A stretch of 63,340 bases of DNA, the filler included, from Olpidium bornovanus S191 (lineage: Eukaryota > Fungi > Olpidiomycota), in NCBI GenBank assembly GCA_017911155.1. It is 26 parts of 26 records of this genome, joined end to end, with 100 filler letters (N's around TTAATTAATTAA, not from the genome) between each part and the next. Parts side by side here need not be neighbours in the genome. Positions count along the whole stretch, not along the records: positions 57,654 to 63,340 come from JAEFCI010005919.1; 25 more parts are not named here. One strand, written 5' to 3'. Shown piece by piece: positions 107-63,340 of the stretch (positions are counted from its first letter, which is position 1; each line of letters opens with the position of its first letter). The notes under the pieces were generated by a model. The model worked only from the letters and a program-made list of their open reading frames with translations, was not told the DNA's origin and did no database searches. The translations under genes and the position numbers were made by a program.

Positions 107-703
107 TCAAACCGTTGCATGCAAAACATCCTTCCAAAAATCGACCAGGAAAATTCGCATCAGCGATGACCAAAACTGGACGCGGTCATCCATTGTGCGG
201 TGGCGACGTTTGACGATGGGAGTTCTGCGCTGGCTCAGCCGGCATGGTGGCGGTGAAAGTAATCTCTCGGCGACGTAGATGTGCGGCAAGTTTTCAAATG
301 AGATGTACTCCGCCACGTTTTGAGTTTTGTGGCCGGTTTCATGGAAGTACGGTACATTGGCCAAAAGATGCTGACGGAACACTTCCGTGGACGGAAGAAG
401 TTTGTGGCGTGGCATGAAGTGGGGAGTTCAGGTAATTGCCGACAAGTCCGGTCGCCGTTGCTTCAGCCATTGCGCACGATTTGCCACGATTGCGACCACG
501 TCTACTACGACCATCCTCGCACTATCGGCGGGGTACTGCCCGGATCTCGACTTACCCTTGTCGCTGGCGCTACCGCGGGCGTTGCGAGTGGGCATTACTC
601 TCCATCCCATCCTTGGCGTGGCCGGTAACGCCCGACGTCGACGACGTGCAATGGCCAAGGGCGCATCTGCTGGGCGGCAGCTAACGACGCACGGTGCGTT
701 GGT
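107..703 (-). CDS. Possible exon of an unassigned protein (one in-frame TGA at 428-430)
   Basis: One minus-strand frame is open from 703 to 431 and again from 427 to 107. It is followed by a plausible intron (GTTTGA donor near 112, CTAAT branch point, CACAG acceptor near 5). No family recognised. Confidence 0.25.
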
Positions 704-1354
704 TCAAATTAGAGTTCCTGCAAAGCCTCTCAATAAGATTCAGCAAACACCTGCTGAATCTCAGCAAGCACGACGCCGCGGCGGCCTCGACGCAGGTTTT
801 TCGACCTTGGCGGATAAATCCGCTCGGGTTTTCCCGGGCCCCGCCGCAACCTGTGTATTCGGGAACGGGAATCACGGGGTCTTTTGATACGCGCACATGT
901 CAGATTCAAAACGCGAGGCCTGACGTCCGCCGCGCGCCGCCGGGCCTGATCGCAGCGCGCAAAGGTCAGGACGGCAAATAAGGGCGAGCGGCGGCGGGTG
1001 GTGGGCGGTTCGGGGCGGCCTTTTCCGCCCGCGCTCGCGGTTGACGCGCGTCCCGCGTTCGGCCAATTTGGCCGCGGCACCGGCCGCGCCATCCGCCCAC
1101 ACAACCCGGTGCGATAACGGGGAAGGAAACGCGGGACGCGCGCAATTATTATCTTTTTTTTTTTTTTTTTTTTTGGTTTGTTAACCACACGTCGCCGGGG
1201 GAACAAGCAGAGGGCGCGGGCATTCCGTCAGACGCCGCGCCGCTGCACGGCGAGCCGACGGGACGCCGCAGGGCGTGGAGCATAAGTAGGGAAGACCGGG
1301 CTCCCCGCTCCCTTCCCGCTCCCCGCCCCTTCCCCTGGCTGGGGTTCGCGAAAC

Positions 1355-3109
1355 ATGACCGTGTCCCTCCCGGCCGCCGGCCTCGGCCTGCCGCGCGACT
1401 GCCGCGATGCGGCGCCGGCGCCGAAGAGGGCGGCCGCGGCGAGGAGAAGCGCGTTGCGTTTCGTGTTCCTTGCGGCCGTCCTGTTGTGCCTCGTGGGTCC
1501 ACTCCGCCACGCGCTCCTGCTCACGGGCGACCCCGCGGCGTCGCGGCCGCTGTTCGGTGCCGGCGAGTCGGCCGCGTCGCGCTCGTCAGCGTCCCGCAAC
1601 TTCGTTGCGACCGGAACGCCTGCCGCGGAAGATCGCAGCCGGGCCTACAGTCGACAGCGTCGCCCCGCGGAGGAAGGCCGTTTGCCATCAGGCATCTTCG
1701 TCGGCACCCAGGGCGAGGCAGCGCCGCTCGGCCAAGACGCGGCGGGGGCACCGTCCGCCGCTCAACTCGGCCTAGAGCGAACGGCGGTGGAGGACGGAAG
1801 TCGGCCGGTTGAAGAAAGGGAACGCGCGTCGGACACAACCGGGCTTTTGCCTCAGCCGGCGGGGGGGCTTGCAACTGCTGACGCCGAACTGGAAGACGCC
1901 GGTTTCGGGAAACCCGACTTCTCCGGGTTTCTCGGCGGATCTTGGAACGGCGACCGGCCCGACTGGGATCAGTTTTCGAGGCAAGGGCGCACCAGGTTCT
2001 TCACGGAGCCGATGGCGGAGGTCGCCCCCGAGAGCGCCTCCCGTCAGGCCGCGGACGCGGACACCGCTGCCGGCGATTCTGCTTCCGGCCCCAGGAGGTT
2101 CCCGGGGTCCGGAGGCTCCCTCTCGATGTCGCTGAGGGAGGTCACGTTCATCCTGCCGGAAGTGGAGAGGGACAGCGTGATCGTGCTCACGATGTCGACC
2201 GCCCCGTTCTACGCCTTTTTGAAAAACTGGGAATGCTACGCCCGGCGGATCCTCGGCCGACAGTTCCTCGTACTGACGAACGACGCCGGGTTCGGGGAGG
2301 TGCTGGCGGCAGCAGACGGCTTTCACGTCCTTGTGCAGGAAGGCGCCGGGGGCGGAAACCCACTCCTGGAGTCTGTGAACTTCGGCACGCTGGCCTACCA
2401 GCGGCTGATGCTCTCGCGGACGGAGCTGGTGGCGCAGCTGCTGGGCCTCAACCGGTCGGTGCTCATCGCGGACAACGACGCCGTGTGGATCTCCGACCCG
2501 TTTCCCGCGCTCGCCGCCCACGGCGAGGGCCACATCGTGGCGTCGGACGACGGGGACCGGCAAGCCGGCCGGAGCGTGCTCTGTGGCGGCTTCCTGTTCC
2601 TCCGGCCCTCGCCCCCCGCGCTGCGCGTCTGGTCGGAGGTCCTGATCCGCCACCGCGACTTGGTGCTCAGGGCCGAGAAGCTGCAGCGGCTGGAGCACCG
2701 CACGGAATCCGAGCAGTCCATCCTCAACGACCTCGTCGACGAAGAATTCCGCCGGGCGAGGCTGCTCGACGAAGCCGACGCGGCGGAGGCCGGCACCGAG
2801 CAACGGCAAACGCCGCGGCCACAACCCCTCAGCGTCGTTTACCTCGACCAACGATATTTTCCGTCCGGGCGCCAGTACTTCGGCCGGAAGCAGCAGCGGC
2901 TGCCGCCCGCCGATGACGGCAAGGTGCGACCCATCGTTGTTCACAACAACTGGGTCGTCGGCGGCGAGAAAAAAATCGAGAGGTTCAAGCGCCGCAACCT
3001 CTGGGCCCTTGGAAACTCGTTTCCCCTTGCCCTGCAATTAGGATCCGCGGGCAACGAGGCGCGCAAGGCGACTTGCAGCCTGCCGTCGTACATCCCCGTC
3101 AAACCGTAG
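1355..3109 (+). CDS. Nucleotide-diphospho-sugar transferase (PF03407 / GT77-like), type II membrane protein, single exon
   Basis: 584-aa ORF with N-terminal TM segment (FVFLAAVLLCLVGPL) and a low-complexity stem. Family motifs: FLKNW, VLIADNDAVWISDPF (DxD region), LCGGFLFLRPS, EQSILN, LDQRYFPSG, VHNNWVVGGEKKIERFK. Confidence 0.85.
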   Translation: MTVSLPAAGLGLPRDCRDAAPAPKRAAAARRSALRFVFLAAVLLCLVGPLRHALLLTGDPAASRPLFGAGESAASRSSASRNFVATGTPAAEDRSRAYSRQRRPAEEGRLPSGIFVGTQGEAAPLGQDAAGAPSAAQLGLERTAVEDGSRPVEERERASDTTGLLPQPAGGLATADAELEDAGFGKPDFSGFLGGSWNGDRPDWDQFSRQGRTRFFTEPMAEVAPESASRQAADADTAAGDSASGPRRFPGSGGSLSMSLREVTFILPEVERDSVIVLTMSTAPFYAFLKNWECYARRILGRQFLVLTNDAGFGEVLAAADGFHVLVQEGAGGGNPLLESVNFGTLAYQRLMLSRTELVAQLLGLNRSVLIADNDAVWISDPFPALAAHGEGHIVASDDGDRQAGRSVLCGGFLFLRPSPPALRVWSEVLIRHRDLVLRAEKLQRLEHRTESEQSILNDLVDEEFRRARLLDEADAAEAGTEQRQTPRPQPLSVVYLDQRYFPSGRQYFGRKQQRLPPADDGKVRPIVVHNNWVVGGEKKIERFKRRNLWALGNSFPLALQLGSAGNEARKATCSLPSYIPVKP

Positions 3110-4355
3110 CGCCGCTCGAAACTCTCAAAGCAAGCGACTTTCAGCATTTTGCCCCCCCTCTTCTGCCCGCGCGATTAAATGATAGAATTTCGAAACCACT
3201 GCCGTTCCCCAACGGGGAGCCCGCCATATTTATTTATCGTTTTTTTTTCGTCCATTACGCACACATGTGGTCTGTTCTCCGTTCTTACAGGATAGGCGAT
3301 CCGTTCCCCTCCCTCTCGTTCATTCCGGTTCAAAATTTTCATCCTGTCTTCCGCCGAACCTCGCGTTCGACTCGCGCACAAAACTAATACAAAAGACGCA
3401 GAGGCCGCCGAAAAAGGAAATATCGAGGCCCCGCCACAGCACGCGTAACGTCCGCGCCCCGTCACGAACGACGGGCGCGAGTTCCCGGCCCGAAGCTGTG
3501 TCTCCGGGTGACTCCGCGAAACCCCGCGGCGGGGTGCCGGAGAGTCGGAAGCCTGGGATACCTATCCTTGCCAGGTGCCTCCCAGAACGCTCGCCCCCCG
3601 CGGGCGGTGTTTTCTGTCTCCGCTTTGCATCCAGCACCCTTCGTATCAACGTTGGTCTTCCCACTTTTGATCGTGACCGCCCGACGGCGCTCCCTCGACC
3701 GGAATGCTATTTATTATCATTACATTAAATTAATTACTTTTCAAATTTTCGATCGGACGGCGGCGGCGCAGGACGCAGACGGCGCCGTTGCTGCTCCAAG
3801 TCGGAGCCCTTGCTTAGAAACGTCAAAACATATAATGATCTATATAACCCGACCGGGTTCTGCAGGACAGAGCCCCGTTGCCCAGGGAGCACGACGTGGG
3901 GGTGTTTGACAAGATTCCCCCGCCCCCCTGCCGATTCTTTAGAACCCTAGGAAGGGAAAACAAAAAAAGGCTTTGTCTCCTGGCGTGAAGCGACCAGCGT
4001 TTTGTGGTTGCTAGCCGCGTCCGCACGCATCCTCTGTCGTTTTTCCGTTTTGGTGGCTCCGCCTTTTCTGGGGAATAGGGGAAACTCGAACGCATGGCGT
4101 CCGCTGGATTCTTCACAACAGTTTCAAGTTCCGCTGGGAAGGTCTGGCGGATACCCAGCAAATGACGTGCGAATAATTCGCCGGCCAACCACGCGCCGGC
4201 TCGCGCGCCCTTCAGGCGGGCCCTTTACTTAAGACATGATTACCGTTACGGTTTCGCTCTCTTTTGCTTCCTTTATTTCTTCTTTCTTTGTTTGCTGTTC
4301 TGCTCTTGGGAGGGTGGAGCTGGCTGCGCGGGCTTCTCCCCCACAGGAGCAGCAC

Positions 4356-4455
4356 NNNNNNNNNNNNNNNNNNNNNNNNNNNNNNNNNNNNNNNNNNNNT
4401 TAATTAATTAANNNNNNNNNNNNNNNNNNNNNNNNNNNNNNNNNNNNNNNNNNNN
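4356..4455. other. Artificial contig-joining spacer (N44-TTAATTAATTAA-N44), first of 25
   Basis: Identical 100-nt spacers start at 4356, 5750, 8338, 10509, 12688, 14146, 15733, 17980, 19941, 21816, 28258, 29888, 33843, 36205, 37397, 39971, 41590, 42995, 46198, 48223, 49563, 52392, 54731, 55954 and 57554. TTAATTAATTAA places stops in all six frames. Confidence 0.99.
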
Positions 4456-4821
4456 CATGAGCCTGCTGCGTCCTTTCGCTTCCGGCGGCCTTTTGATTTT
4501 CTGCGCGACGACGCCCCAGGCGGCCCAGTTGGCGTCGGGATCGGCGCCGGGCGCGAACGCGACGCAGTCCTTGGCGTTGACCCGCACCCGCACGTGCAGC
4601 CCGAGGCCGTGGCATCTCGTCACGACAGAAAGCGTGCTGGTCACGCTGTTCATGACAGACGCCAGAGAAAACTTCTGCTTCTTCAGCTTCACATCGGTGG
4701 ACTGGTACATGAGCACGTCCTTGACGATCGTCCCCTGGAAACGCGGGCGTCCGGAAAAAAAGTCGGCGCGCGTTCAGCGTCGCGCGGGGGGCGAAAACAA
4801 CGGGAAAAATAAGTCCCCCCC

Positions 4822-4856
<35 letters not shown>

Positions 4857-5652
4857 TTTTCCGCCCTTTCAAGCGAAAAAAAAGCGTCGCTCCGCGGAAA
4901 GGCGGCGGGTACCGACGACGACGTGAACTTGAGACGCCAGGACCCGGTGCCAATCCCGTATGTTGGGCGCGAACGTCATCTGGTCCAGCACGTCCAGGAT
5001 GCCGCTGATCGCGTGGAGAGGGTTCTGGAGCTCGTGGGAGACGAAGTTCAGCAGGCCGGCCTTCGTCGCGTATTCCCTCTCCGCGTTCAGCTTCGCCGTC
5101 TCCAGCTCCTCGGCGACCGCCCGTTTCGACGTGGTGTCTCGGAACAGGACGATGCACGGGCGCATGCGGGCGGCGCGTTCCGTCAGGCCGCCCAGCGATT
5201 TCCCGTCCGCCGACGTCACGCACTCCGTTCGGATCCCCGAAGCCACCGGCGTTGTGGTGGAGCACCCCCGAGCCGCCGTTCCCTCGCGATCCTCGCGCGC
5301 GGGTCGCGTGCCGCCGCCGTCTCCGCCCTCCAACGCGAGTTCCGTTTCCTCCGAGCTCGCGTACAGCTCGGGGTAGAAACGGGTGCTAAGAAGGCTAATG
5401 TTGGCCTCGGCGGTGATCCGCGCGCCGTCCCTTTGGGTGATCGTGACGTCCGCCATCTCTTCGGAACGGGAGCTCCCCGCCGAGCTGCTCCTCCTGCTGA
5501 ACGAGCAGCCGTCCGGCTCCCAGAACCCCTGCGGGGTGCCCGACGAGACGCGCGTTTTGCCCAGGTCGCACGGCAGATCCTCAAAGAAGTGCCGGAAATG
5601 GCGCTCGTAAAGAGGCACCTCGCGGCACAGGTCAAAATACCCGAAAAGCGAG
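4456..5652 (-). CDS. PAS-domain sensor histidine kinase (internal fragment, 2 exons)
   Basis: PAS/PAC-like segments (SLFGY...; VTITQRDGARITAEANISLL; IVLFRDTTSKRAVAEELETAK) precede the HisKA H-box GLLNFVSHELQNPLHAISG. An intron ending at the TTCCAG acceptor (4735-4736) leads to GTIVKDVLMY...KFSLASVM. Confidence 0.85.
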
Positions 5653-8723: not shown

Positions 8724-10080
8724 GGACCCGGCCTGACCCAGACCTGTTTAATCCGGTGGCGCGGGCCCGGCCCGGATTGGCCCGGCTTAAATCTTATGCC
8801 AGAATCAAAAGCGCGCTTATACCATTCATCGGCCTTGTTTGTAAAGCGGCCTTGTTTATAATGTCTGTAAAAAAAATCCAAGTCGTTCCCACTCTAAGCT
8901 TAAAAATCGATTTTATCTCGTTCGCACAATTTTTGCACGTCATTGCGGATTTATTCAGGCGGCTGGAATAAGAAACCCCCCAGGCGGCGCAAAAAAAAAA
9001 AAAAAAAAAAACTAAACGCATCCTGAAAAATTCGAAAATGGATTTATCTCTTTGACGTCCGGAATGATATTTTATCCTATCAAGTGTAGCTTGCGAATTT
9101 ATCTTGCGGGGCCACCCGAATTTTATATTGCCAGCTTTCGCCAGCGCGTTACTGCTTCGAAGAATCCATCCGGCCGCTCGCAATTCTTTTCCGCAGCGGG
9201 GGCGACTGATGGTGGCGTGACCGATGGCAGTCGTGCCCTCGGCGGGGCAAGGGATAGCCCCGGGAGAAAAGGCGTGCCCTCTGTTTGGGGAGCTATACGC
9301 GTTGCCACCGGGGTGGGGGGGGGAAGGTGTCTGTCTGTCCGTCTGTCTGTCTGCGCGTTTGGAGAATTGCGCGTCCGGAACGTGAGTTGCGTTGCGCCCG
9401 GTTTGCTCGGCTCTACCCCTGTGAATGGGTTCTGCCGGGGGGAACCGGCCTGGGAAAAGGCTCTCCCCTCGGCACCAGCGGCCGCCCCCGCGGAGCGGTC
9501 CCTCCACCAATGGCCGTCGAGGGTGGGGGGGGGGCAACTTTCCACATCGGAAAAAATATCAAGCAAATTCTAAACCACAACCCGCCCTTCTGACAGACTA
9601 CTGCCTTTCTGCGGGTGTCCTGCAACTGCCGGCCGCCTCGCGAGACGGGAGGTCGACGACTCCGCGAGGTCTGTGAAGCCGCAGACGCGGGAAAGAAGAG
9701 GCTCGGGCCGATTTTCCTTCAAATCGTCCTTGTCAAAAGGACGAGCTTTGAAATCATTCTTGAACATCCTAACACCTTCAAAAACCTTGTCATTCTCTCC
9801 TTTGTTTCAAAACACAGATTTAATTCCGCTTTTTTTCTGGCTTTTCAGCATTAGACACCTCAAGTTTGCGTTTGGGAGATGCAGACCCAGAAGCGATAGT
9901 TAAGGTGCCCAGGCCCCCGCACAACGTAACAAATGGGACTTCAAAGGAAGCCCAGGCCCGGCCCAAAAGAAAGCAGATTTGCCGTTAAATGAGGGCCAGG
10001 CCCGGCCCGTGGGCCTAAAACCCAGGCCCCGGACCCGGCCCATGCCGGGACGGGTCCTGGCCGGCTTGTGGGCCGCCCAG
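8724..10080. repeat. Two clusters of GGCCCGGCCC-type motifs (possible DNA-transposon subterminal repeats)
   Basis: Dense GGCCCG/GGCCCA motifs at about 8724-8790 and 9905-10080. I found no terminal inverted repeat, TSD or transposase. Confidence 0.35.
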
Positions 10081-10608
10081 GTCGTCGACAGGCATATGGG
10101 CGACATTTCCCTTTTAGTGGTTTGTGTTGGGGCTTTTTGTGACTGCGATGGGGACGCGGCCCCGAACGCCGCGCGCCCGCCGAAATCCGAGGCAGATCAA
10201 TCACGTGACTGCCGAGCGCATCCTTACAGCAAGCGTGGACTGTACGAAGAAGTAAGCCGACTTTGCGGCGGACCCCAATTGCCGAGTTTCATGTCGACGA
10301 AATGCTGTGCGAAGCACGCAGCCGGCCTGCGGGACTCGCAGGGACGAGCCTGTCGCTGGTCCCCAGGGTTCCACTCACCCAACACCCCCCCCCTTCCCCC
10401 GCCCCCCTCCGCCAACCCGGCAACGCGCGTTGGGAAGGAGCGTCACCATTCTTTGCACGGGGGTTAGACGTGTTTTGTATGGGGTTCTTGCTATCGGGCT
10501 TTCGCCCANNNNNNNNNNNNNNNNNNNNNNNNNNNNNNNNNNNNNNNNNNNNTTAATTAATTAANNNNNNNNNNNNNNNNNNNNNNNNNNNNNNNNNNNN
10601 NNNNNNNN

Positions 10609-11984
10609 ATCTGGATTTTCCGAGCAATATAGGTTGCAAAATGTCGACGCTGGCGCGCAAAGAGTACCTTGTACTCCCGTCCACTGTCGTCCTCGAACGT
10701 GAACTCGGCAGCGTACTGCTCGTCCCATGGTGCCGGCCGCGTTTGTGATGCCCACGGCCTGCTCTCCTTTTCGCCAGACGACGGTGCGCCGGCAGACCAG
10801 TCGCTCAACGCGTCGAGTATTGGGCGAGCCGGAGCATCCGTCGAGTCGACCGTTTGACGCCTTTTCCTAGCGCTCTTCGGCCGGGACGAAAGCGGCGCCG
10901 CGATGAGGCCGGCGGATGGAGAAGTCGGGGAAGCCGCGCCGGAGGAAACGGCAGCCGCTGCCGCCGCCTCGTCCGTGTGTGGAATCGGCGCAGGCGTCGG
11001 AGCAGGGACGGGTTGATGATCTGGGCCGCTCTCCTCGGTTCCCGGTTTGTCGGCGTTTGCAACGGGCGCGGAAAGGTCTTTCTGCGTGGTGGCCTCAATC
11101 GCGGCTTCCGGGGCTTTAGGACCTGCAGCCGCCAACGTGCCCACGTTCGTCTCCTGTGCAAATTTCGGGGTCGCCGCCCGCGATAGCGCGGCGATTGATT
11201 CCTCGTAAACGGGAGGCAAACACAGTTGCAGCTCCACCGTGTGCACCAGGAACTCGGACCGCGACACGAACGTGTACTCGACGACGTTGGCGTCCGGCAA
11301 CACGTTGACTGCTTCGAACGGCGTTCAGAGACAAAGGGAGAGGGGAGAGGAAGAGCTCAGGACCTCCGAAAAATTTCACTTTTATTATGCGTCGCCGTGA
11401 TCAGTGAGCGGAAGCGGGGCAGGCTTTGGACGCAAAACAAAGAATAAAGAGCGGTGCTTAGATGCACCTTGCACCAACGTATCGGGCCGGCCGTTTGGTC
11501 CGGAGACCGCGCCACACGTGGTGTACTGATCCGTCACTTCCGGGGCGCTGCTGGAGTACAAGGTCGAAGGATCCAACCCGTCAAAACGTGAAGCGTTCGG
11601 CGGCGCCGGGCGCGGCGTCCATTCGTCGGGGAAAACTGTCGACGGCTGGAAATCTTCTGCGGCGCCCTTGAAAAGACGCGTTACAGGTGTGCAGAGAAAC
11701 GGCGGGCGGGAGAGGGGAGGAGGCGCGGCGGCGCTGTCATTACGCGCGGGTTGGCGGGTCGACGAAACATCCCGGCAACACCGGCGGAACACACTGACCG
11801 CGGGGTCCTCGCGGGCAGGAAGCGGCGGCGGGGAAGCGACAGAGCCGCGGTGGGCCTCCGTCGTCCGCGCCGTCGCGGGGGGTGTCAGCGGCCGCGGCGT
11901 CGCAGCCGGGCCGCCGGGAGCCGTCCTCTTCGGCCTCCTGACGAGGGCAAACAGCAGCGGCGACTGTGCGACCGCCGCCGGCAT
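10609..11984 (-). CDS. Hypothetical protein (2 exons, 3' truncated)
   Basis: ATG at 11984 (MPAAVAQSPLL). Joining the GTGCAT donor to the CGAAG acceptor gives in-frame RPDTLVQ-A-VNVLPDANVVEYTFVSRSEFLVHTVELQL, open to the contig end. Family not recognised. Confidence 0.6.
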
Positions 11985-14594
11985 GGCCGGTCTCTCCCGG
12001 CAGGGCCCGCACGCCTGCGGAAAAAAAAAAAAAAAAAAAAAGGGGAGCAGGGAGCAGTTTTGCGGCCGAGTCTGATCCTGTGCGCGGCGGGGACGTGGGG
12101 AGGGCGAAGGGAGCGGGCGGTCGGGGCGCGCGCAGGCCGGGGGGCTGTGTGACGTTTTTGCGTGGCGGGGAAAAGTGCGGGGGGAAGGGCAGAGAGAGCG
12201 CAGAGAGAGCGCAGAGAGAGGAGGGCAGAGAGGGCGGCCCGCGCGGGCGAGGAGCGCACGGCGGCGTCGCACGCGCGCCCCCCGGCGGCCCCCGCGGATC
12301 TGTCTGCCAGGAAACGCTGTGCCGCGCCGAAACTCTCGGCGGTTTCAGGTGGTGTTCCCGAACGACCCGCGAGCACCCGCAGCGACGACTCTGTGCTGCT
12401 TTGGCGACGCCGGCCCGTGCGGGGACGCCGTGACTGGCACCGCCACGCCCATTTTTATCGGAGGATGGGGTTTCAATTTCTGTAAACCACGCGCGAGCGC
12501 GCGCGCGGGTTGCAGATGCCGTCTGGTACGCCTGCCGGGGAACGAACTGCAACCGACTTCCTCGCGGGGACACGAACCAGATTCCGCGCTCCCGTAATAT
12601 TGTCGAGCGGCCAGTTCTGTGCTCTGCGCCTCGACAGGGGGTTCTCCTAGGCATACGATCATGGTGGCGGGCAGGCGGTGCAAAGGGNNNNNNNNNNNNN
12701 NNNNNNNNNNNNNNNNNNNNNNNNNNNNNNNTTAATTAATTAANNNNNNNNNNNNNNNNNNNNNNNNNNNNNNNNNNNNNNNNNNNNCATGCCTCCTCCA
12801 ACTCGGCGTATCCCAAGGGCGACCTGGAGATTGTTGGAGAATGTCGCCGGATAATTAGAACACAAAAAACGATTTAAAAGTTTGGTTATGCGCATACCAA
12901 CCCACTTTTATCTCCGCATTCTTCAACCGGCCGTGTTGGCGCATTCCTGGCGCGGCCGTGCCGGACCGCCGAAAAAACTTCGTAACGCTCCGCGATGTGG
13001 GAGTATCCTCAGAGGGCCGCGGAGCTGTTTGCAAAATATATCGTTGCAAATTAAAAATGCAAAACGAAAATTCGGCAGTCATTTGCGTACCAACCCACCT
13101 CCTGGCAGTTGGAAAACACGTCCGATGCTCAACGGAGGTGAGGTTGGCGACGGGAACTGTGCCGGGGCTCCGAGGGCAATTTCGCAACACGCGAGGCGGC
13201 CTTGGGACTTCCGCCGCGTCGCTTGCTTCTGTTGGCGCGTCCGCGCCACAGATAGTTTGCGGAACGGTCAGTTCGTTGGAACCAAAAAATTTTCAGCCGG
13301 GGGTTTGGGTGACCTCGCGTTCGCGGTTTTTTTTTTTCTCGCAAAAGAGCGACAACGTTGCGGCGCGGAAGGAAAGAGGGGAGGAAAAGGTGTCGACGAC
13401 TTTGCGCTTACCGCGTCGTGGGGGGGGGGGGCTTCCGGGAGGTTGTCGCAGCGCGCGCACTCGTCGGCAGCGGTCCCCGTCTGCGTCCCCGGCGCCCGCC
13501 CCGTCGCCGGCAGACGAACCTGAACCGGCAGACGAGGGCGGATCGCGCGGGCGCTTGCGGGGGTTTTCGCGGAGGGACGCCACCTGCGCAGGGGCCTTCG
13601 GCGGCCGGCTGCCTCGCCGCAAGCCTCTCGGACCTGCGAGGAGCCATTTGGTAGGAGTGAAACGCGGGGGGGTGTGGATGCTGGCGGTGGGGAGGTTGCC
13701 AGTGGTTGCGGGGGCGGTGTGGGAAGAGGGCAATTGTTTGCCGGCCGGTGGGTCTGGCGCATTTGGGGGATCTCTCGCTCTCACTCTCTCGTTGATTTGG
13801 GGGAATGAAGAAGGCGGAGGCTCGGCGGCAAAAGGCAAGACGCCTTGTACACCCCGGCCCCGGGGGTGCGTGGGGGAAAACGGGCGGGGAAAGGGGCCGC
13901 CCGGCTCTGCCCTAGGAACTAGTATGGGGAACAGTGGGGGCGTGTGGCGGCTGACCGGGCCCTGCCGCCCTTCCTTCCTCCCTTCCTTCCTTCCTTCTTT
14001 CGGGCGCGGGCGTGAGGATTACACGAGGGGCGGAGCAGGAGGAAAAGCGTCAGAAAGAACCAATAAGAAAGACCGCGCCTTCCGTCTTCCTCCCGTGCGC
14101 GCTCGCCCGGCGCACCTTGTACGCCCTCCGCCGCCGCCCTGTTCCNNNNNNNNNNNNNNNNNNNNNNNNNNNNNNNNNNNNNNNNNNNNTTAATTAATTA
14201 ANNNNNNNNNNNNNNNNNNNNNNNNNNNNNNNNNNNNNNNNNNNNCACCCCCGGAGAGGGGAGCACGAAGGGGGAGAAGAAGAGCCTGCATCACAACCTT
14301 TTTGCGGGGGGGGGGGGGGGGGGGGGAGGGGGTGGGGGAGGACGCGTATTCTCCTTTCCAGCGCTGGAAATGAGGGGAAAGCGGGGAGAGGGAGGGAGGA
14401 AGGAGGACGTGGATTGCCCGGCGAAGATTGTGGACGGCGTCGCGGCTTGTCCGTTTTTTTTTTTTTTACTTTCATCGTTTTCTTACGGAAACCCCGAGTG
14501 GACGGCATCGCGGCTTGCCCGTTTTTTTTGTTTTTTTGCTTTCATCGTTTTCTCATGGAAACCTTCGGGGTTCACCTCCTCTGCGTTTGCTCAG

Positions 14595-15732
14595 GACACC
14601 AGCTATATGGTCGGGGCCATCCCGAAGCGCTACAAGGTCGTCGGCCTTGACCCTGGCCTGGAGACGTACTTTGCCATGGGCCGCGGCGTGCAGAAGCCCG
14701 GTGTAGACATTCCCTCTCTCTCCATGATAAAATACCTTGACTCGAACTACCACATTTTCCCGGCCTTGGTGGGTGTTTGTTGCGGCGGCGCCAGCACGCG
14801 AAGTTTCCTTTTTCTGTGCTAACGTCATCTCGGGTCCTGCGCTGTTTGTCCCTCTTCTTCCAAAAAGCTGGAGGCGGACCAGAGCTTCTGCCTCAACAGC
14901 ACCTTCATCATCGACCATTACCTTGAGGCCAAGGAGGCGGGCATCGAGACTCGTCCGGTAGTGTTCGGTCCGGTCTCATTCCTACATTTCGCGCGCTGCA
15001 CAGGGCCCGTTGGATCCATGACGCACCTGTCGAAGCTTATTCCTGTGTACGTCGAGCTCCTCAAGAAGCTGAAGGACGCGGGAGCGCAGTGGGTCCAGAT
15101 CGACGAGCCTTGCCTAGCGTTCGACATTCCCGAAGAGACCCGACGCGCTTTGAAGACGGCGTACACCGCTCTTGCGGCCGTCGGCATCAAGATCTTCCTC
15201 GCCACTTTCGGAGGCCACCTCCGCGAAAATCTTGGCGCCGTCATTTCTGATAAGCTCCCGATCGCGGCCCTTCACATCGATCTCGTGCGAGCCCCGGAGC
15301 AGCTGAACGACGAGCTGCTCACGATTTTCCCGCAGGACATGATCCTTTCCCTTGGTTTGGTTGACGGGCGAAACATGTGCGTAATAGCGTCGCGGTTTTG
15401 TTTGCCTGCCTTCCGGCATGTGGAGCATGTTCCATTCTGACGGGGTGCTCCTAGCTGGAAGTGCGACTTGAACAAGGCTCTTGATCTGGCCGAGAGGGCC
15501 GTCTCCGTCCTTGGCAAGAGCCGCGTCATGGTCGGGCCCAGCAGTTCCCTCATGTTCGCGCCGCACTCCCTGGATGGCGAGACCAAGATGGATCCTGAGA
15601 TCAAGGACTGGCTATCCTTTGCCACCGAGAAAGTTCGCGAGCTGTGCATAATTACCGCCGCGCTGAACCGGGGCCGGGATGCGGTCAAGGAGGAGCTTGC
15701 TGCGAACAAGAAGAGCATCGACGCGCGCAAGG
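14595..15732 (+). CDS. MET6: Cobalamin-independent methionine synthase, N-terminal barrel fragment
   Basis: Exons 14595-14768, 14868-15376 and 15455-15732 splice in frame. Motifs: YFAMGRG, DSNYH, TRPVVFGPVSFL, GAQWVQIDEP, LHIDLVRAPEQL, GLVDGRNIWK, EIKDWLSFATEK. Confidence 0.95.
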
Positions 15733-56713: not shown

Positions 56714-59256
56714 CTGACGCCCGCACGCACACACATCCTCCCTTCGCCTGCCGGACCCACTCCCACTTCCACTCTCCCAGCCCGCCGATGGTGAGCTCAA
56801 CGAACCCGCTGCGCTCCGCGTGCGGAATCGTCGCCTTCAATCCGGGGACAGAAGGCCGCGGAGGGGAAGGGGGAGGAACGAGAACGACACCGGGGAAGAC
56901 AGGCTGCCGCTGAGTTCAACTGAGGGAATGAGTTGAGAGGCGTGAGATGTGTTGTTGACAAATGCTGTTGTGTTGTTGTATGCGCTTTGCCGCGAGAGAG
57001 CGAGTGAGGAGAGGAACAGACGCGCCGCACTCGCTCACCAACACTCAACAACCACTCCCCCCACCGCTGGGCGGAAAAAGGGGGAACGCTAAAACAAGGA
57101 GCAAGTTTGCAGCCGGTACGGCCAGAGCGCTGAAATAAGATATCCTTCCCTGCCCAGCGCCCTAAGCCACCCGGCATGCCGGCAACGAAGCCTTCCCTCT
57201 CCACACCCACAAGTCATCGACGTCCCGTCATATGGTCAAAAAAGCACGGACGTCCGACGGAGAAAAAAGAGGAAAAGTAAAATCAATTTAAAAATAATAA
57301 ACAAATGAGAACCGAACTCACCAAGCCCTCCCGAAATATCCAAACGTAAAATACTGAATTCCCAAATTCCCGCTTGCGCGCATTAGTTGGCGCGACGCTT
57401 TTCGTCCTGCAGACATCGGCTCCCCTTGGGAGCATGGCAGCCGGTTTCAGTTAGCAGGAAGTTATCTGCTTTTTAAGTGAAACTCGTAATTCTTCAAGAT
57501 AAATAACGCAGATGAATAGTGGGGGGTGGGGCACGACAAAGCACCACTGTAGGNNNNNNNNNNNNNNNNNNNNNNNNNNNNNNNNNNNNNNNNNNNNTTA
57601 ATTAATTAANNNNNNNNNNNNNNNNNNNNNNNNNNNNNNNNNNNNNNNNNNNNAAGCATAGGAAAACAGTTGGCGCAAAACAAAAGGAAAAAAGGCGTGT
57701 CGGCGCGTCAGGGCTTTATCACCGCCCAGGTTGGGCTCGGAACCTTGTTGAATGACAATGGGTTGACCGGCGGGTCAAACTTGACCACACCTACCCGGAC
57801 GTACTCTTGTTGTTTATCGAGCGATGGTTTGTTCACGGGTAATTTTTATTTGTGCTTGAGAGCTCGGATACAAACAAGAAGCCAACAAGTACATGCACTA
57901 ATACCCCAAAAATCCAAAAGTCTAGTGAAATTAGTCAAAAGGACAAAAAAGGACTTCGGAATTTTGGCTAAGCGACGGGCCACAGGCCTCGTTCCCGACT
58001 ACCTCCATGGGTGACTGCGTCCTATCTCAATGGTTTCCTTGCCATAGTCTTGCCGGTGCAGAGGTGCCAGGTGTGCAAGCGACGCAAAACCACCCGAGAC
58101 TGCGCACAGCGCGCGAAGCAGACGCCTGCGGTTTGCTTTCTTCGTGCTCGCCCTGTCTGCGCCGGGCGGGAAGGGCCCCGGTTGCACGTGGAACACGTGA
58201 CTTGGCGTGCTCACGTGCGAAATTCCGGGGAGTTTCTCGTGCTGCGAACGCAGAGAATCCGCCCCCCGCGCCGCCCCCGCCTCCATCGGCGGCCGCGGCG
58301 GCTCCGCTGGTTTTGCGAGCGCCGGTGATGGCGAGCGGGCCGTTCCGCAGCGTCGATCCGGGGGGCTGCCTCAGCGAGTCGGCCAGCAGCGGCGAGGTGC
58401 TCAGCTGCTTGTCTATGGTGCAGCAGTACACGTTCAGGCCGCCCTCGTCGCCGACCGGCATCGCTCCGGCGCCGGCTGCAGCGCTTCCGCTGTCGGTTGG
58501 TGGTGGTCTGCGGCGGTCGGTCGGGCGTGGCTTTGGCGGGTGGGGAAGGCGGCTGAGAGGTACAGTGGGTAGCGCGTCCTTCGGGGGCGATCTCTCATCT
58601 CCTCCCGTCTCCTCCCCCCTCCGCCGAAAATGTTCGTCACGAATTGATGATGCATTGCAGGCGCAGTAATGCAATTATTGCAATTGGAGAGCTTGCATTG
58701 CATTTGACCCTCTTCCGCCCGCCCGTCCTGACCCCACTTGGCCCCGTGCCTCAGCGGGCGAATGACGGCCCGCAACCCGGCCATGCGCGCTCTCTCTCTC
58801 TCGCGCCCCGCTTCAATAGGCGCGCCCCCGTACCACTCCACCCTCTCCTCTTCCCTTGACCCCTTTCCCAGCACGGGGATAAGTAGAAGGTACGGTCGTT
58901 CAAGGCGCAGTCAGATAAAAAAGAAAAAGCCCGCACGCGCTTTGCGAAGGCCGCGAGTGCGACCGGCGAGTCCGCTGCTCTGATCATCGTTCCCGTTCGG
59001 TCGCGAAAGCATCCGCGCCGGGCTTCCTCGTCGGAACGGGGCATCAGGCGTAACAGCACGAGCGCGAAGATCCGTTCATAAGCCCCGAAGGCCCGTGGGC
59101 CCGTAACCGGACGCGCTGTGCACCTTCGCTCTCGGGTGCGGTGTTGACTACGCCGTCGTTGTATTTTGGGCAGTTTGGGAATTCGAGTTCGGGGGACGAA
59201 GCCCTGCATGATATGTGACCAATAAATCCGGCGGGCGGCCGGTGGCCTTCTCGCGA

Positions 59257-60656
59257 TCACTCGGGAAGGCACTTGTACTCCCGTTCCTCGTGGAAAAACG
59301 TCCCCGCCGCATACAGCTCCTCCAGCTGTTCGGCAAGGCGCGGGCAGGCGGCAGCGCACGCTAAAAGGAAAAAGGCCGGTTGATCAGCAATCCGCGTTTC
59401 CAGACTCTCCCAACCATTTGCAGGCTATCGCAACCGGAAAACACCCACGCCATCCGTTCGGGTCACCCCCCCGGGGGCAACGGCCGTTGCAATCTGCTTC
59501 CAAAAAAAAAAAGTAGGCGGACCACTCACAATCTGTGACCTGTTTGGCCCACCGGAAGTACTCCTGCACCCGCTCTGCTGTCCAGCGCTCCGGCACCGAC
59601 CGCTGCAGGTCTCGCAGGTTGTAAAGCTGCGGTTTTCGAAAAATGACCACAAAGTTACGGCCTCTGTCCCGCCACGCGGGCCGCTTTGCCTCCTTTAGCG
59701 GAAATCAGGGCCGACCGTACCTTATCCGCCAGCTTCACTCGCTTCGCCTGCAGACGTGGAAAATGCGCGCGTCCGCCGCGGAGTCAGAACCAGCCTTACG
59801 GCCGCTTCACTCGGAAGGGCCGTCGACGAACCAACACGAAGATAAAGCGGCTGCCCGTTCCGACCTTGGCGCTCTTGTGAGGCGCCGTCTCGACTTGCCT
59901 GCGCTTCCTCTCGCTCTTCTCCAGCGTTTTGTCGTCCGTGCATTCCCGGACGATTTCGGCGACCTCCGGGCCGAACTCATTCTCAAGCTGACGCAGCACG
60001 ATCGGCGTGGCCCCGCGGTCAGTTCCAGCTGCCTCAGCTACACGGGGGAAAGCGAGGGGGGGGGGGGGGGAGATACCGGGCGGTTACTACCTCTTCAAAA
60101 GTCGTCGCAGTGTCTTCGACCGTGTCGTGCAACACTGCAGCCTGCAGCGTTGCGACGTCGGTGATCCCGGCGTCCGTCAACATCTTAGCGACGCCTGAGT
60201 TTGGCGGCAGGACACAAAAACGACGTACCCCAGCGCGGAAAGCGCGGAAATGGCTGCATTAGCTCTCTCTCCGTCGGGCCTCTTGCCTTTTTTCCCATGC
60301 ACCGCCCCCCCCCTTTCCCCACTCCCCAAAACGCACGTCGCCTCCGGAGGACACAGGTCGCATACCAATCGGGTGATTAATGTATGCTACGGGGTAAGCC
60401 AAGAAGGTAAGTCGCGGGAGGCGCGATACGCGGCGAAAGTCATCAAGGGGGAGAAAAGGGAGGCACGAGACGTGAACGGTCACCGACGTGTCCGCCGCAC
60501 GTCCTTGCGCTTCTGGTCGCGGTGCTTGAACGCGGCGAAGTCGACGGCGCGCAGCAGCGCAGCAGCCGCGTCGGGGACACCGGCTCGGGAAGGCGCCGCG
60601 GGCGGACACGGGAAGCCGCTCGGGCTCGAGCGGTAGTCGTCCTTGCCGCGGCCCAT
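59257..60656 (-). CDS. HDDC3: HD-domain protein MESH1/HDDC3 ((p)ppGpp hydrolase / NADPH phosphatase family), complete multi-exon gene
   Basis: Spliced: [31 protein letters not shown] / VAKML...LQAAVLHDTVEDT / EFGPEVAEIVRECTDDKTL..ERKRRQVETAP / AKRVKLADK / LYNLRDL...WTAERVQEYFRWAKQV / ...KCLPE*. Confidence 0.93.
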
Positions 60657-61650
60657 TAAATAAAAAAAAATATTTTGGCTTCCTCCTAAATCTCTCTCTC
60701 TCTCTCTCTCTCTCGCCCGCGCGAGGGGAGAAAGAGAGAGAGCACAGAGAGAGGGTGAGCAGAGAGAACAGAGAGGCCAGACCGAGAGCGAACAGAGACA
60801 GAGAGACAGAGAGACAGAGAGCACGCCGCGGTGCACGAAGGTCGGCCAAGGCGGCTCCCAAGGGAAAATAAGAAGGAAAAAAGGCCGGGCTCAAACCACC
60901 GCCGCACGTAATATATCCATATTTATTACATCCGGCGCCGAGGGTTCGTCAACCCTGCCGCACAGCCGCAAACGGGCTCTCTCTCCAGCACGCAACCCCC
61001 TCCTTTGTTTTTGGCTCTATTTTTTATTTTTTATTTAATTATTATTTTTTTGGTTTTTTTTTGTTTTTTTTTTTGTTTTTTGGGAGGTTCGGTGTTTCTC
61101 TTAGGGCAGACCCGCGTAACCGTCTGAACCAAAACGTGTCGAAAAAACTTCGTGCATTGTGAAGAGGATGTGGTGCTGCGGAGCAAGAACGTGTGCCCAC
61201 AAGACCCTGCGCGATGCGAGAACCACCATGCAAATTATTATTAGGGGGCAAGACGCTATGGCCGTTTTTGCGAGAAAAAGGAAAAACGGGTGTGATAGCG
61301 AGGGGTCATTATACGTGGAGGGGAGGGTAGAGGAACCCGTAGACGGTGTGTGATTATTGGCCCCGCCTGGACGGGCCCTTTAACTTCCGGCATCTTCCAT
61401 TTCCTCGTCCTCGTCATGCTTCACATAAGTGTTGAACGAAAGTTCCCGATGCACATGAAGAGCGGAGGGGGACGGGTGGGCGGTGGGGTGACGTCAGGAA
61501 AAATTGAGAGTCAAATTCGGCTTGGGACGGTTCCGGAGGAAAGACGAGGGATAAAAAAAGAAAAATAAGTCAGCGCGTGCAGTTCCCAGCCGGCCGGCCG
61601 GCCGGTTAGGGAAAGTCCCTTCCAAAAAAAAAAAATAGAAAAAATAAAGT

Positions 61651-62026
61651 AAAATAAGAAGACGGAAACCTCGCGATTTTTGCTTTGGTTTGTTCTCTCT
61701 CTCGCGTTTCCGGACCTTTTTTCCGGCCTTTTACCTAATCATCAATATCACCGTCGTAATTCGGGGATCCGATGAGCGGAGATTCCGGCTCGTCATTGAC
61801 GTCCTAGGAAGTGGGGGGAAAGGGGGAGAAAAAATAGGATATAATGAAATAAAATAAGAAGACGGAAACCCCGCGATTTTTGCCTTGGTTCGTTCTCTCT
61901 CCCGCGTTCCCCGATTCTTTTTTCCGGCCCCTTACCCCATCATCGTCATCACCGCCGTAATCCAGCCATTCGCTGAACGAAGATTCCTAGTCAGTGACGT
62001 CCTCGGAAGTGGGGGGAAAGGTGGGG
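61651..62026. repeat. Diverged tandem duplication, 200-bp period (probably inside the 5' LTR of the copia element)
   Basis: AAAATAAGAAGACGGAAACC at 61651 and 61851. GTCCT.GGAAGTGGGGGGAAAGG at about 61801 and 62000. Confidence 0.85.
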
Positions 62027-62063
62027 CGAGGGGGAGGGGAGTCAGAAGAAGCCTTCCGTAGCA

Positions 62064-62076
62064 CATTATCAGCACC
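62064..62076 (+). promoter_or_regulatory. Putative half-tRNA-Ile primer-binding site
   Basis: CATTATCAGCACC directly follows a CA dinucleotide (62062-62063). It is complementary to the anticodon arm GGUGCU-IAU-AACG of eukaryotic tRNA-Ile, with one mismatch. Confidence 0.55.
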
Positions 62077-62325
62077 ATCTAGATGCCTCTGCTCCCCCTG
62101 TGTGCCCTTGCACCTTGCTACCATCGTCCCTGCCATCTCGACGTGCCCGTCGACCTGCCCGCCACTCCGTGAACGCCGAGCCCGCTTGCCAGCAGCCGGA
62201 CCGGTCTACTCGCCGCCGCCGCCACCGCCACCGCCACGACCATCCGAGAGACGGTGTCTGCCTCCGCTCTGCCGCTCTGCCCGCTCGCCCTTGCTCTCGT
62301 TTTTTTGTTCTGGAAAACAGAAAAC

Positions 62326-63340
62326 ATGTCCGTTGCCGCCGCCACTGCTAAGCCGAGGCTGGCTGCCCTGGAGTTCGAGGCCCTGTCTGCGGACGGGAGT
62401 AACTACCTCCAGTGGGCCATGGACGCTAAAAGCCACCTGGTTGCCAAGGAGGTCGAGGCTGCTGTGGCTTTTGACGGCATGTTCCAGGCGTTTCAGAAAG
62501 CCGCCGCGTGCATGCGTGCCCTGAAGGCCCGTGCCTTAAACCTCCTCTGACGCCACCTGGACCGGAGGCTTCTGAAACAGTATGTCTTGGAGAAGGAGCC
62601 CGCGCGCCTGTAGACAGCGCTCCGCACCCGGTTCGATAACCAGCGCATCGTTCTGCTGCCGCGTGCACAGAACGGTTGAATGACCCTCAGGGTGTTGGAC
62701 TTCAAGTACATCGCGGAGTACGACGCCCGCCTCCATGAAATCGTCGCCACTCTCTGTCTCTGTGGAGAGGAAGTTTCTGACAGCCGAATGATTCAGAAAA
62801 CGCGACCACCCTCCCGGTGGGAATGACCATGGTAGCAGAGCAGCTACGGAACATGGAGTTCCAGAGTTACGATGCGCTCATGACTCATCTCACATTGGCG
62901 GAGAGCAACATAGAGCTTCTCCTCAGGACCGCCGAGGAGCGCCGTGCGGGGGCTGCCACGTCGAAACCCACGCGATCCAGTCACACGGTGAAGACCGAGG
63001 CCGGAACCTAGGCAGCGGAAAGGGGAAAAGTAAAGGTAAGAAGGGCAAAGGCAAGTCGGACGTTCCCCGAGCGGAGGCGAACCAAGCAGGGACGTGGTGG
63101 GGGCCGCTCCGCGAGACACCAAGTTCCTATGGTGAGCCATAGCTAGAGATAGACCAACGCCCTTACAGGCTATTGTATTAGCCCGTGAGCTAGCGCTTTT
63201 GGGAAAATAGACGGGCAGTTGAGGACAGGCGGCGCCGGGCCTTGTGGAAAGTCGTTGTTCTGGTCCTTGCACTCGAAACTCCAAATCTCGGCCTCTGATT
63301 TCCAGTTCTCTCGAGCGTTCTCTCTGTCTCTCCTTCTCTC
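62326..63340 (+). mobile_element. Ty1/copia gag pseudogene (plant Bianca-like gag pattern)
   Basis: LEFEALSADGSNYLQWAMDAKSHL...KARALNLL*RHLDRRLLKQYVLEKEPARL*TALRTRFDNQRIVLLPRAQNG*MTLRVLDFKYIAEYDARL...LCLCGEEVSDSRMIQKT, a 1-nt deletion near 62803, then QLRNMEFQSYDALMTHLTLAESNIELLL. Stops at 62548, 62611 and 62677. Confidence 0.88.

Follow-up and report, generated by a model that had tools for sequence, protein, structure and literature searches.

Does a fungus that inhabits plant roots harbor a retrotransposon of a plant kind, and if so, how did the element come to be there? These questions are raised by a locus of Olpidium bornovanus, a natural candidate for such exchange because Olpidium is a vector of plant viruses that grows within the cells of roots. 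Exchange of transposable elements between plant and fungal genomes is considered infrequent and ancient, and a recent ecosystem survey found none (PMC10586619).

The window, i.e., the whole stretch of DNA that was analysed, comprises 63,340 nt joined from 26 parts of the O. bornovanus S191 assembly, and its piece 57654-63340 was read end to end; all positions given here count along the window. On the evidence of its sequence, the region is probably (roughly 0.8) the decayed 5' part, consisting of LTR, primer site, leader, and gag, of a Ty1/copia element of the Bianca kind in the genome of an early-diverging fungus. The lineage was assigned from the gag and the primer site only, since reverse transcriptase, RNase H, and integrase are linked to no Olpidium copy.

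LTR, tandem duplication, and leader

A putative 5' LTR was placed on the plus strand at 61429-62063. Its end is firm: the sequence up to 62063, GAAGCCTTCCGTAGCA, is an LTR-like end reading ...CGTAGCA (...CGTAACA in the counterpart from another Olpidium copy, L001), and the primer site abuts it. An earlier reading of the locus made from the sequence alone (hereafter the sequence-only reading) had pointed to a CA end at 62063, and this end was recovered there with the 13-mer of the primer site directly after it. The start is a candidate only (TGTTGAACG). LTR starts read in relatives (Ipomoea L003, L005, and L076) are TGTTG or TGTTA, the candidate start of L001 is alike, and 61429 (TGTTG), the nearest site of this type, is a guess. 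A search for an inverted terminal repeat that would place the start returned only the LTR end itself. Within the piece 57654-63340 no 3' LTR was found; LTR pairs are present in the relatives L005, L003, L078, and L129.

The tandem duplication of about 200 bp named in the sequence-only reading is present within the putative LTR, with an upstream copy at 61629-61828 and a downstream copy at 61829-62028, both on the plus strand. The copies are identical at 163 of 194 aligned positions (84%) and lie 198-201 nt apart from start to start; the commonest difference, accounting for 11 of the 31, is T in the upstream copy versus C in the downstream copy. TRF at default settings did not report this duplication. 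The LTR end lies 35 nt past the downstream copy.

The terminal 20 nt of the LTR (62044-62063, plus strand), corresponding to the U5 end and presumed to be the integrase recognition end, are conserved as part of a 35-nt island (62044-62078 in the window, 760-794 in L001) that is 91% identical between the two copies (blastn E=2e-8), although their gag proteins are only 57-60% identical. The island is the sole non-coding stretch common to the window and L001, both flanks being unalignable. Since it alone has been kept in the non-coding DNA of the two copies, the conjunction of LTR end and 13-mer is more than chance. Downstream of the island lies a C-rich 5' untranslated leader with (CCGCCA)n repeats (62079-62325, plus strand); the leader of L001 is longer and of similar character. 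The sole Rfam match was a (CT)n/(GA)n hairpin.

Gag pseudogene and its relatives

The leader is followed on the plus strand by a gag pseudogene, in accordance with the gag proposed from the sequence alone; its reading is broken at three stop codons and at one frameshift. The first frame (62326-62804) begins with an ATG at 62326 and is interrupted by TGA at 62548-62550, TAG at 62611-62613, and TGA at 62677-62679. After a frameshift within 62795-62804, the second frame (62805-63008) continues and aligns with ...TLTSLPVGSAVLAEQYR...LAERNRELLL of L001. The second and third stops align with tryptophan (codon TGG) in L001, and the first with valine, at a place where plant relatives read ...LRRH/LRHH. 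The three stops fit a decay from G:C to A:T, because two of them are TGG codons in L001 and the remaining one would be a CGA-to-TGA change if the ancestral residue was arginine, as in the plant relatives. Past about 63010 neither a zinc knuckle nor a protease was recognisable in the window. In Pfam the window gag matched Retrotran_gag_2 (E=1e-4) and DUF4219, both under the curated cut-off, and the relatives found with HMMER carry PF14223 together with CCHC knuckles.

A word-indexed protein search with the window gag gave a single match, the O. bornovanus protein P0001 (57% identical). At E<=1e-3 an exhaustive search with HMMER recovered 769 relatives, among which 18 scored below 1e-30. The two best matches, the only close ones, both came from the O. 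bornovanus assembly GCA_017911155.1, and this pair was followed by hundreds of angiosperm and moss-type gag-only proteins, which agrees with the copia-type gag of plant affinity supposed earlier. Ipomoea nil and Andrographis were named among the short gag-only matches. A second search, using a profile built from the relatives, recovered 1653 proteins at E<=1e-10, and its named top matches were all from angiosperms. The moss Ceratodon purpureus is represented by a protein in a second subgroup of the gag, and Tanacetum in a third. In the HMMER and profile searches taken together, the named relatives other than Olpidium were all angiosperms or the moss Ceratodon; the gag thus belongs to a large land-plant family, with Olpidium as its sole named non-plant host. 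Many of the relatives stem from metagenome or run assemblies. Viral and metagenome contigs gave no match when scanned with the gag.

One relative, L134, joins this type of gag to gag_pre-integrs and RVT_2 domains, with gag and pol in two ORFs. The Olpidium copies L001 and L002 extend only to the DSGT motif of the protease. In L001 a stop and about 70 nt separate gag from protease, lying inside a 112-nt insertion that is absent from L002, where gag and protease share one reading frame. A reverse-oriented RNase H fragment in L001 was considered as a classifier and set aside, being only 30% identical to the pol of Bianca-like elements.

Primer binding site

The putative primer binding site, CATTATCAGCACCAT, occupies 62064-62078 on the plus strand. 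It is of the half-tRNA type, being complementary to positions 26-40 of tRNA-Ile(IAU), an internal part of the tRNA (the anticodon arm) and not the CCA end. The site reads TTATCAGCAC (Ile, IAU) and differs from sites for initiator tRNA-Met, which read TTATGAGCC or TTATGGGCC. In L001 the corresponding site, CGTTATCAGCACCAT, follows the LTR end GAAGAAGCCTTTCGTAACA upstream of the gag. Against positions 26-40 of a published tRNA-Ile(AAT) gene sequence, 13 of its 15 positions form Watson-Crick pairs; the two others are a C opposite anticodon position 34 and a T opposite G26. The site of the window has one further mismatch relative to L001, an A for G at its second position. L001 has CG where the window has CA, so that the attribution of this mismatch to CpG decay in the sequence-only reading fits, as does its pairing of tRNA-Ile with C opposite inosine 34 when set against the published gene. 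No tRNA genes were found on the twelve loci scanned (L001-L012).

The 12-mer CGTTATCAGCAC stands directly after an LTR ending in ...ACA in L001, at two Ipomoea nil loci, and in L005, L010 (a run-assembly contig), and L135 (an NCBI contig). Absence of the motif beside the LTR had been named as a counter-argument; the plant relatives fetched carry it right after the LTR. In Ipomoea nil the LTR pair lies about 6.4 kb apart. L005, a metagenome locus with a moss-type gag, is complete: its two LTRs (TGTTGAG...CTCAACA) are accompanied by a polypurine tract and by a 5-bp target duplication that is nearly perfect. There was zero spacer between the terminal CA of the LTR and the motif in six lineages (the window, L001, Ipomoea nil, L005, L010, and L135).

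Two further ideas about the motif were dropped. The base after GCAC, which is C (CAT) in the Olpidium copies and G in the first plant loci, was considered as a sign that the element had adapted to the tRNA of its host. When metagenome contigs were scanned for ACACRTTATCAGCACCAT, more than 120 loci were obtained, and genuine LTR elements with CGTTATCAGCACCAT occur in AT-rich, plant-like contigs (L078, L076, L129, and L032). As these elements, in AT-rich contigs with plant-like proteins, share the Olpidium form, the base is not a kingdom marker. Moreover, a repeat that carries ACACATTATCAGCACCAT and is present in about 57 copies in a few JGI metagenome sets was first taken for an animal-side counterpart and is probably unrelated; its left edge is fixed, lying about 430 nt upstream, no second LTR copy was found within up to 13 kb, and it has no gag.

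Proposed priming by a half tRNA-Ile

Elements of the hemivirus type, namely Drosophila copia, yeast Ty5, Candida Tca2 and Tca5, and Volvox Osser, are a close mechanistic parallel. They likewise belong to Ty1/copia, use as primer one half of a tRNA cleaved within its anticodon arm, and have their site directly past the LTR, covering tRNA positions of about 28-40. Half-tRNA priming has been experimentally shown for two of them, copia and Ty5, in both cases with initiator tRNA-Met. The hemivirus-type elements differ from the Olpidium element in that their site (GGTTATG...) serves initiator tRNA-Met, whereas the Olpidium element would use an elongator tRNA-Ile with the modified base I34. From these two cases taken as analogues, and from what Neumann et al. 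(2019; PMC6317226) assigned computationally for plant elements, we infer that the Olpidium element would be primed by a half tRNA-Ile.

In the mechanism proposed for active copies, the RNA of the element would pair, directly 3' of the LTR, with the 5' half of the host tRNA-Ile(AAU). This tRNA would be cut on the 3' side of the anticodon stem, leaving a new 3' end near position 40. The C in TTATCAGC would stand opposite anticodon position 34; the gene encodes an A at this position, which would be converted in the mature tRNA to inosine, a base able to pair with C. Reverse transcriptase would then extend the tRNA-Ile half into the LTR, producing minus-strand strong-stop DNA.

It is also conceivable that the 13-mer is a conserved LTR-adjacent motif with some other role, such as packaging or dimerisation, and that something else primes the element. 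To our knowledge, half-tRNA-Ile priming has been demonstrated experimentally for no Bianca element, and a high-copy metagenome repeat carries the same 18-mer and is devoid of an LTR pair; both facts would suit such a role, as would the computational nature of the published assignment (PMC6317226). Against it, the motif lies exactly at the place of a primer site, with the zero spacer noted above in all six lineages, and over 13-15 nt it is the complement of the anticodon arm of a single tRNA, save only at the inosine position. In addition, the tRNA positions concerned (about 28-40) coincide with those of initiator tRNA-Met that serve Ty5 and copia. A role other than priming is accordingly regarded as very improbable.

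Host of the element

The intron-rich gene adjoining the element, MESH1/HDDC3 (59257-60656, minus strand; about 7 exons; Pfam HD_4 E=9e-19), lies outside it and had been proposed as a check on the host. Its best matches, at 60-64% identity, came from Glomeromycota, Basidiobolus, Zoopagomycota, Blastocladiomycota, and chytrids; animals came next after fungi, and no plant was among the 120 matches listed. The MESH1 protein of the window had no exact counterpart in the protein collection searched. Because this gene matches early-diverging fungi best, the host is taken to be a fungus. Olpidium is sister to the non-flagellated fungi (PMC7865070), and the pattern of matches is as expected from this position.

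Contamination was considered because the O. bornovanus assembly is a metagenome binned by tetranucleotide composition, obtained from non-axenic zoospores washed off cucumber roots. Plant or algal DNA could have entered the fungal bin, or the element could have been misjoined to MESH1 at the low-complexity stretch 60690-61080; microsatellites and poly-T do lie between that gene and the element, and L001 and L002 come without a fungal gene. However, the composition of the element is that of its fungal neighbor and unlike that of plant elements. The GC3 of the gag is 0.73 in the window and 0.76 in L001, compared with 0.71-0.86 in the neighboring fungal exons and 0.48-0.56 in plant gags, and the element has about 60% GC versus 33-46% in the plant element loci fetched. 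Further, the gag family is carried by three contigs of like composition, and the gag shares at most 45% identity with those of angiosperms, so that the element is not cucumber DNA. An assembly artefact therefore has little probability, and the reading of a resident element in a fungal genome is retained.

Origin of the element

The Olpidium gag is 38-45% identical to each of the plant groups, a level similar to that between moss-type and angiosperm gags (42-44%); angiosperm gags are about 55% identical among themselves. The Olpidium copies differ from each other by 40% in protein, forming two deeply diverged subfamilies in the fungus. This difference, together with the host-like GC3 of the gag, suggests a long residence in the host.

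Gag trees were computed by neighbour joining with bootstrap (own numpy script; 177 columns) on Kimura distances that are saturated at about 1.2-1.3 substitutions per site. The Olpidium pair was held together with a bootstrap support of 96-97%. It joined P0037/L010, which has the plant-type primer site, in 58-68% of replicates, and the moss-type group in 39-69%. When the trees were rooted with a distant copia gag, the Olpidium pair was not basal and grouped with the outgroup in 3% of replicates. These values give weak to moderate indication that the Olpidium pair is nested among gags of the non-seed-plant type.

Because the trees place the pair among such sequences, an old transfer between plant and fungus is favored over a relic lineage. 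Among the origins considered, slightly better than even weight is given to an old horizontal transfer between Bianca elements of the non-seed-plant type and the lineage of this obligate endoparasite of roots, after which the element would have diversified and decayed in its fungal host. A gain in recent times from a host among the angiosperms appears less favored than an old transfer, and the sequence comparisons lean also against a lineage that predates plants.

The latter would be a relic: a half-tRNA-Ile copia lineage older than the split of plants and opisthokonts, or old in fungi, that Olpidium kept and the other sampled fungi lost. The near equality of the Olpidium-to-plant and moss-to-angiosperm identities is what such a history would produce, and the two deeply diverged subfamilies would also suit it. 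Elements of eukaryotes such as L065 have the same primer site and a gag without a BLAST link to Bianca, and hence this type of primer may extend beyond the plant lineage. However, all named relatives besides Olpidium, which are a subset of the relatives, are land plants, the rooted trees do not put the Olpidium pair at the base, and many independent losses would be needed. A relic is thus judged unlikely, though less so than either an artefact or a role of the motif other than priming. The preferred origin, old transfer, can be put more fully: a Bianca-type copia would have passed, in one direction or the other, between the Olpidium lineage and early land plants without seeds, and would have multiplied and diversified in the fungus using the inosine-bearing half of the fungal tRNA-Ile. 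To this fuller account we give an even chance.

Relation to known elements and implications

Primer sites complementary to an edited half tRNA-Ile, in which A34 is converted to inosine, were found in 92% of 260 Bianca elements and, among plant elements, are confined to Bianca (Neumann et al., 2019; PMC6317226), as the sequence-only reading had correctly stated. The assignment made in that study was computational. Half-tRNA-Ile priming is therefore already known from plants as a Bianca hallmark, on computational grounds, and it is the fungal host that is new.

The Olpidium element resembles Bianca (Wicker and Keller, 2007; REXdb; Neumann et al., 2019, PMC6317226) in belonging to the same gag family and in having, directly past the LTR end, which in the relatives reads ...ACA, the motif complementary to the inosine-edited half tRNA-Ile. 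Gag and pol are commonly found in two ORFs with a spacer in Bianca (55% of intact elements; PMC6317226), an arrangement seen here in the relative L134. The Olpidium element differs in its host, a fungus and not a green plant, in its GC-rich composition, and in a gag that is no closer to any plant member than the identities given above, the comparison being by gag and primer site. Moreover, the Olpidium copy L002 reads through from gag to protease in one frame.

That a single lineage of LTR retrotransposons can inhabit fungi as well as non-seed plants has a precedent in the Tcn1-like chromoviruses (Ty3/gypsy), which, as summarised in PMC6317226, are common to fungi and to mosses and club-mosses (Novikova et al., 2010), a distribution for which that summary names constraint or horizontal transfer as explanations. 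These elements belong to another superfamily, are self-primed, and form a mainly fungal and vertebrate lineage with few plant hosts, whereas the Olpidium case concerns a mainly plant lineage with one fungal host.

The fungal host makes a transfer of retrotransposons between plants and fungi plausible and testable. If the reading is true, no Ty1/copia lineage would have been shown before this one to be common to a fungus and plants, and inosine-dependent half-tRNA-Ile priming would gain a wider known range of hosts, with a primer that depends on a modified base working across kingdoms. Classifiers trained on plants would call such fungal copies plant, which is relevant when the genomes of root-associated organisms are screened for contamination. 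Further, a plant-type retrotransposon family with fungal base composition and subfamilies of its own would be a concrete and datable case of transfer.

Host DNA adjoining the copia fragment

The host gene next to the decayed Bianca-like copia fragment was an intron-rich gene of about seven exons for a MESH1/HDDC3 (p)ppGpp-hydrolase-like protein (window 59257-60656, minus strand), with its best matches in early-diverging fungi (60-64% identity). No identical protein was present in the protein collection searched, and the gene therefore seems to lack annotation in the public record. Directly upstream of its start, a (CT)n tract followed by an imperfect (GA)n tract formed a long hairpin-like inverted repeat (60691-60821), which gave spurious sub-threshold matches to miRNA families in Rfam; a T-rich stretch lay beyond this repeat (61004-61081). 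In addition, window 58100-58560 was very GC-rich (71-74% GC), with overlapping long ORFs of 215-220 aa on both strands. The one ORF tested from this stretch (58027-58674, minus strand) had no Pfam match, and the stretch may represent a further host gene or an effect of composition only.

Related gag copies and elements

Comparison of L001 with L002, two O. bornovanus contigs that carry further copies of the same gag family, revealed a 112-nt insertion between gag and protease in L001 (2340-2453), within which …cacgctgacacgcaccggcacgct… occurred twice as an internal duplication and the gag stop was located. L002 did not contain the insertion, and its gag and protease were encoded in one frame. 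The truncated Bianca-like copy in L001 was abutted by part of another copia element, its C-terminal RNase H end (2960-3430, minus strand), which lay in the opposite orientation and shared only about 30% identity with Bianca-like pol.

On locus L012 (99-1298), whose contig has a GC content of 69%, the encoded protein P0062 combined a Bianca-like gag N-terminus with an unrelated Ala/Pro-rich tail matching PNRC weakly; it may be the product of a chimeric or domesticated gene of a GC-rich organism.

L005, a eukaryotic metagenome contig of 46% GC, contained an almost complete element (9546-14770) whose LTRs were 96-98% identical, adjoining a Sin3-like gene; such an element was present in L006-L008 as well. 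The gag of the L005 element grouped with a protein of the moss Ceratodon, and the element carried the half-tRNA-Ile primer site; Neumann et al. (2019; PMC6317226) place the moss copia elements of their study in the Bryco group, with half tRNA-Met as primer.

Primer-site sequence outside the Bianca gag family

The sequence ACACATTATCAGCACCAT also occurred in a high-copy repeat at about 57 loci among L013-L132 (e.g., L130 5322 and L052 3573), originating from a few JGI metagenome sets (contig prefixes Ga01233xx and Ga02096xx). Its left edge was fixed about 430 nt upstream, while the downstream sequence took two alternative forms. Neither an LTR pair within 13 kb nor a gag was found for this repeat; a mariner-like fragment was located nearby, suggesting that the repeat resides in animal host DNA.

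Further, metagenome locus L065 harbored an open copia gag-pol reading frame of 1564 aa (171-4923), reaching the contig end and starting directly at ...TTTCATAACA|CGTTATCAGCACCAT. Its gag was assigned to Retrotran_gag_2 (Pfam, E=2e-14). Since BLAST gave no link between this gag and Bianca gag, the half-tRNA-Ile primer site may be in use beyond the Bianca gag family.
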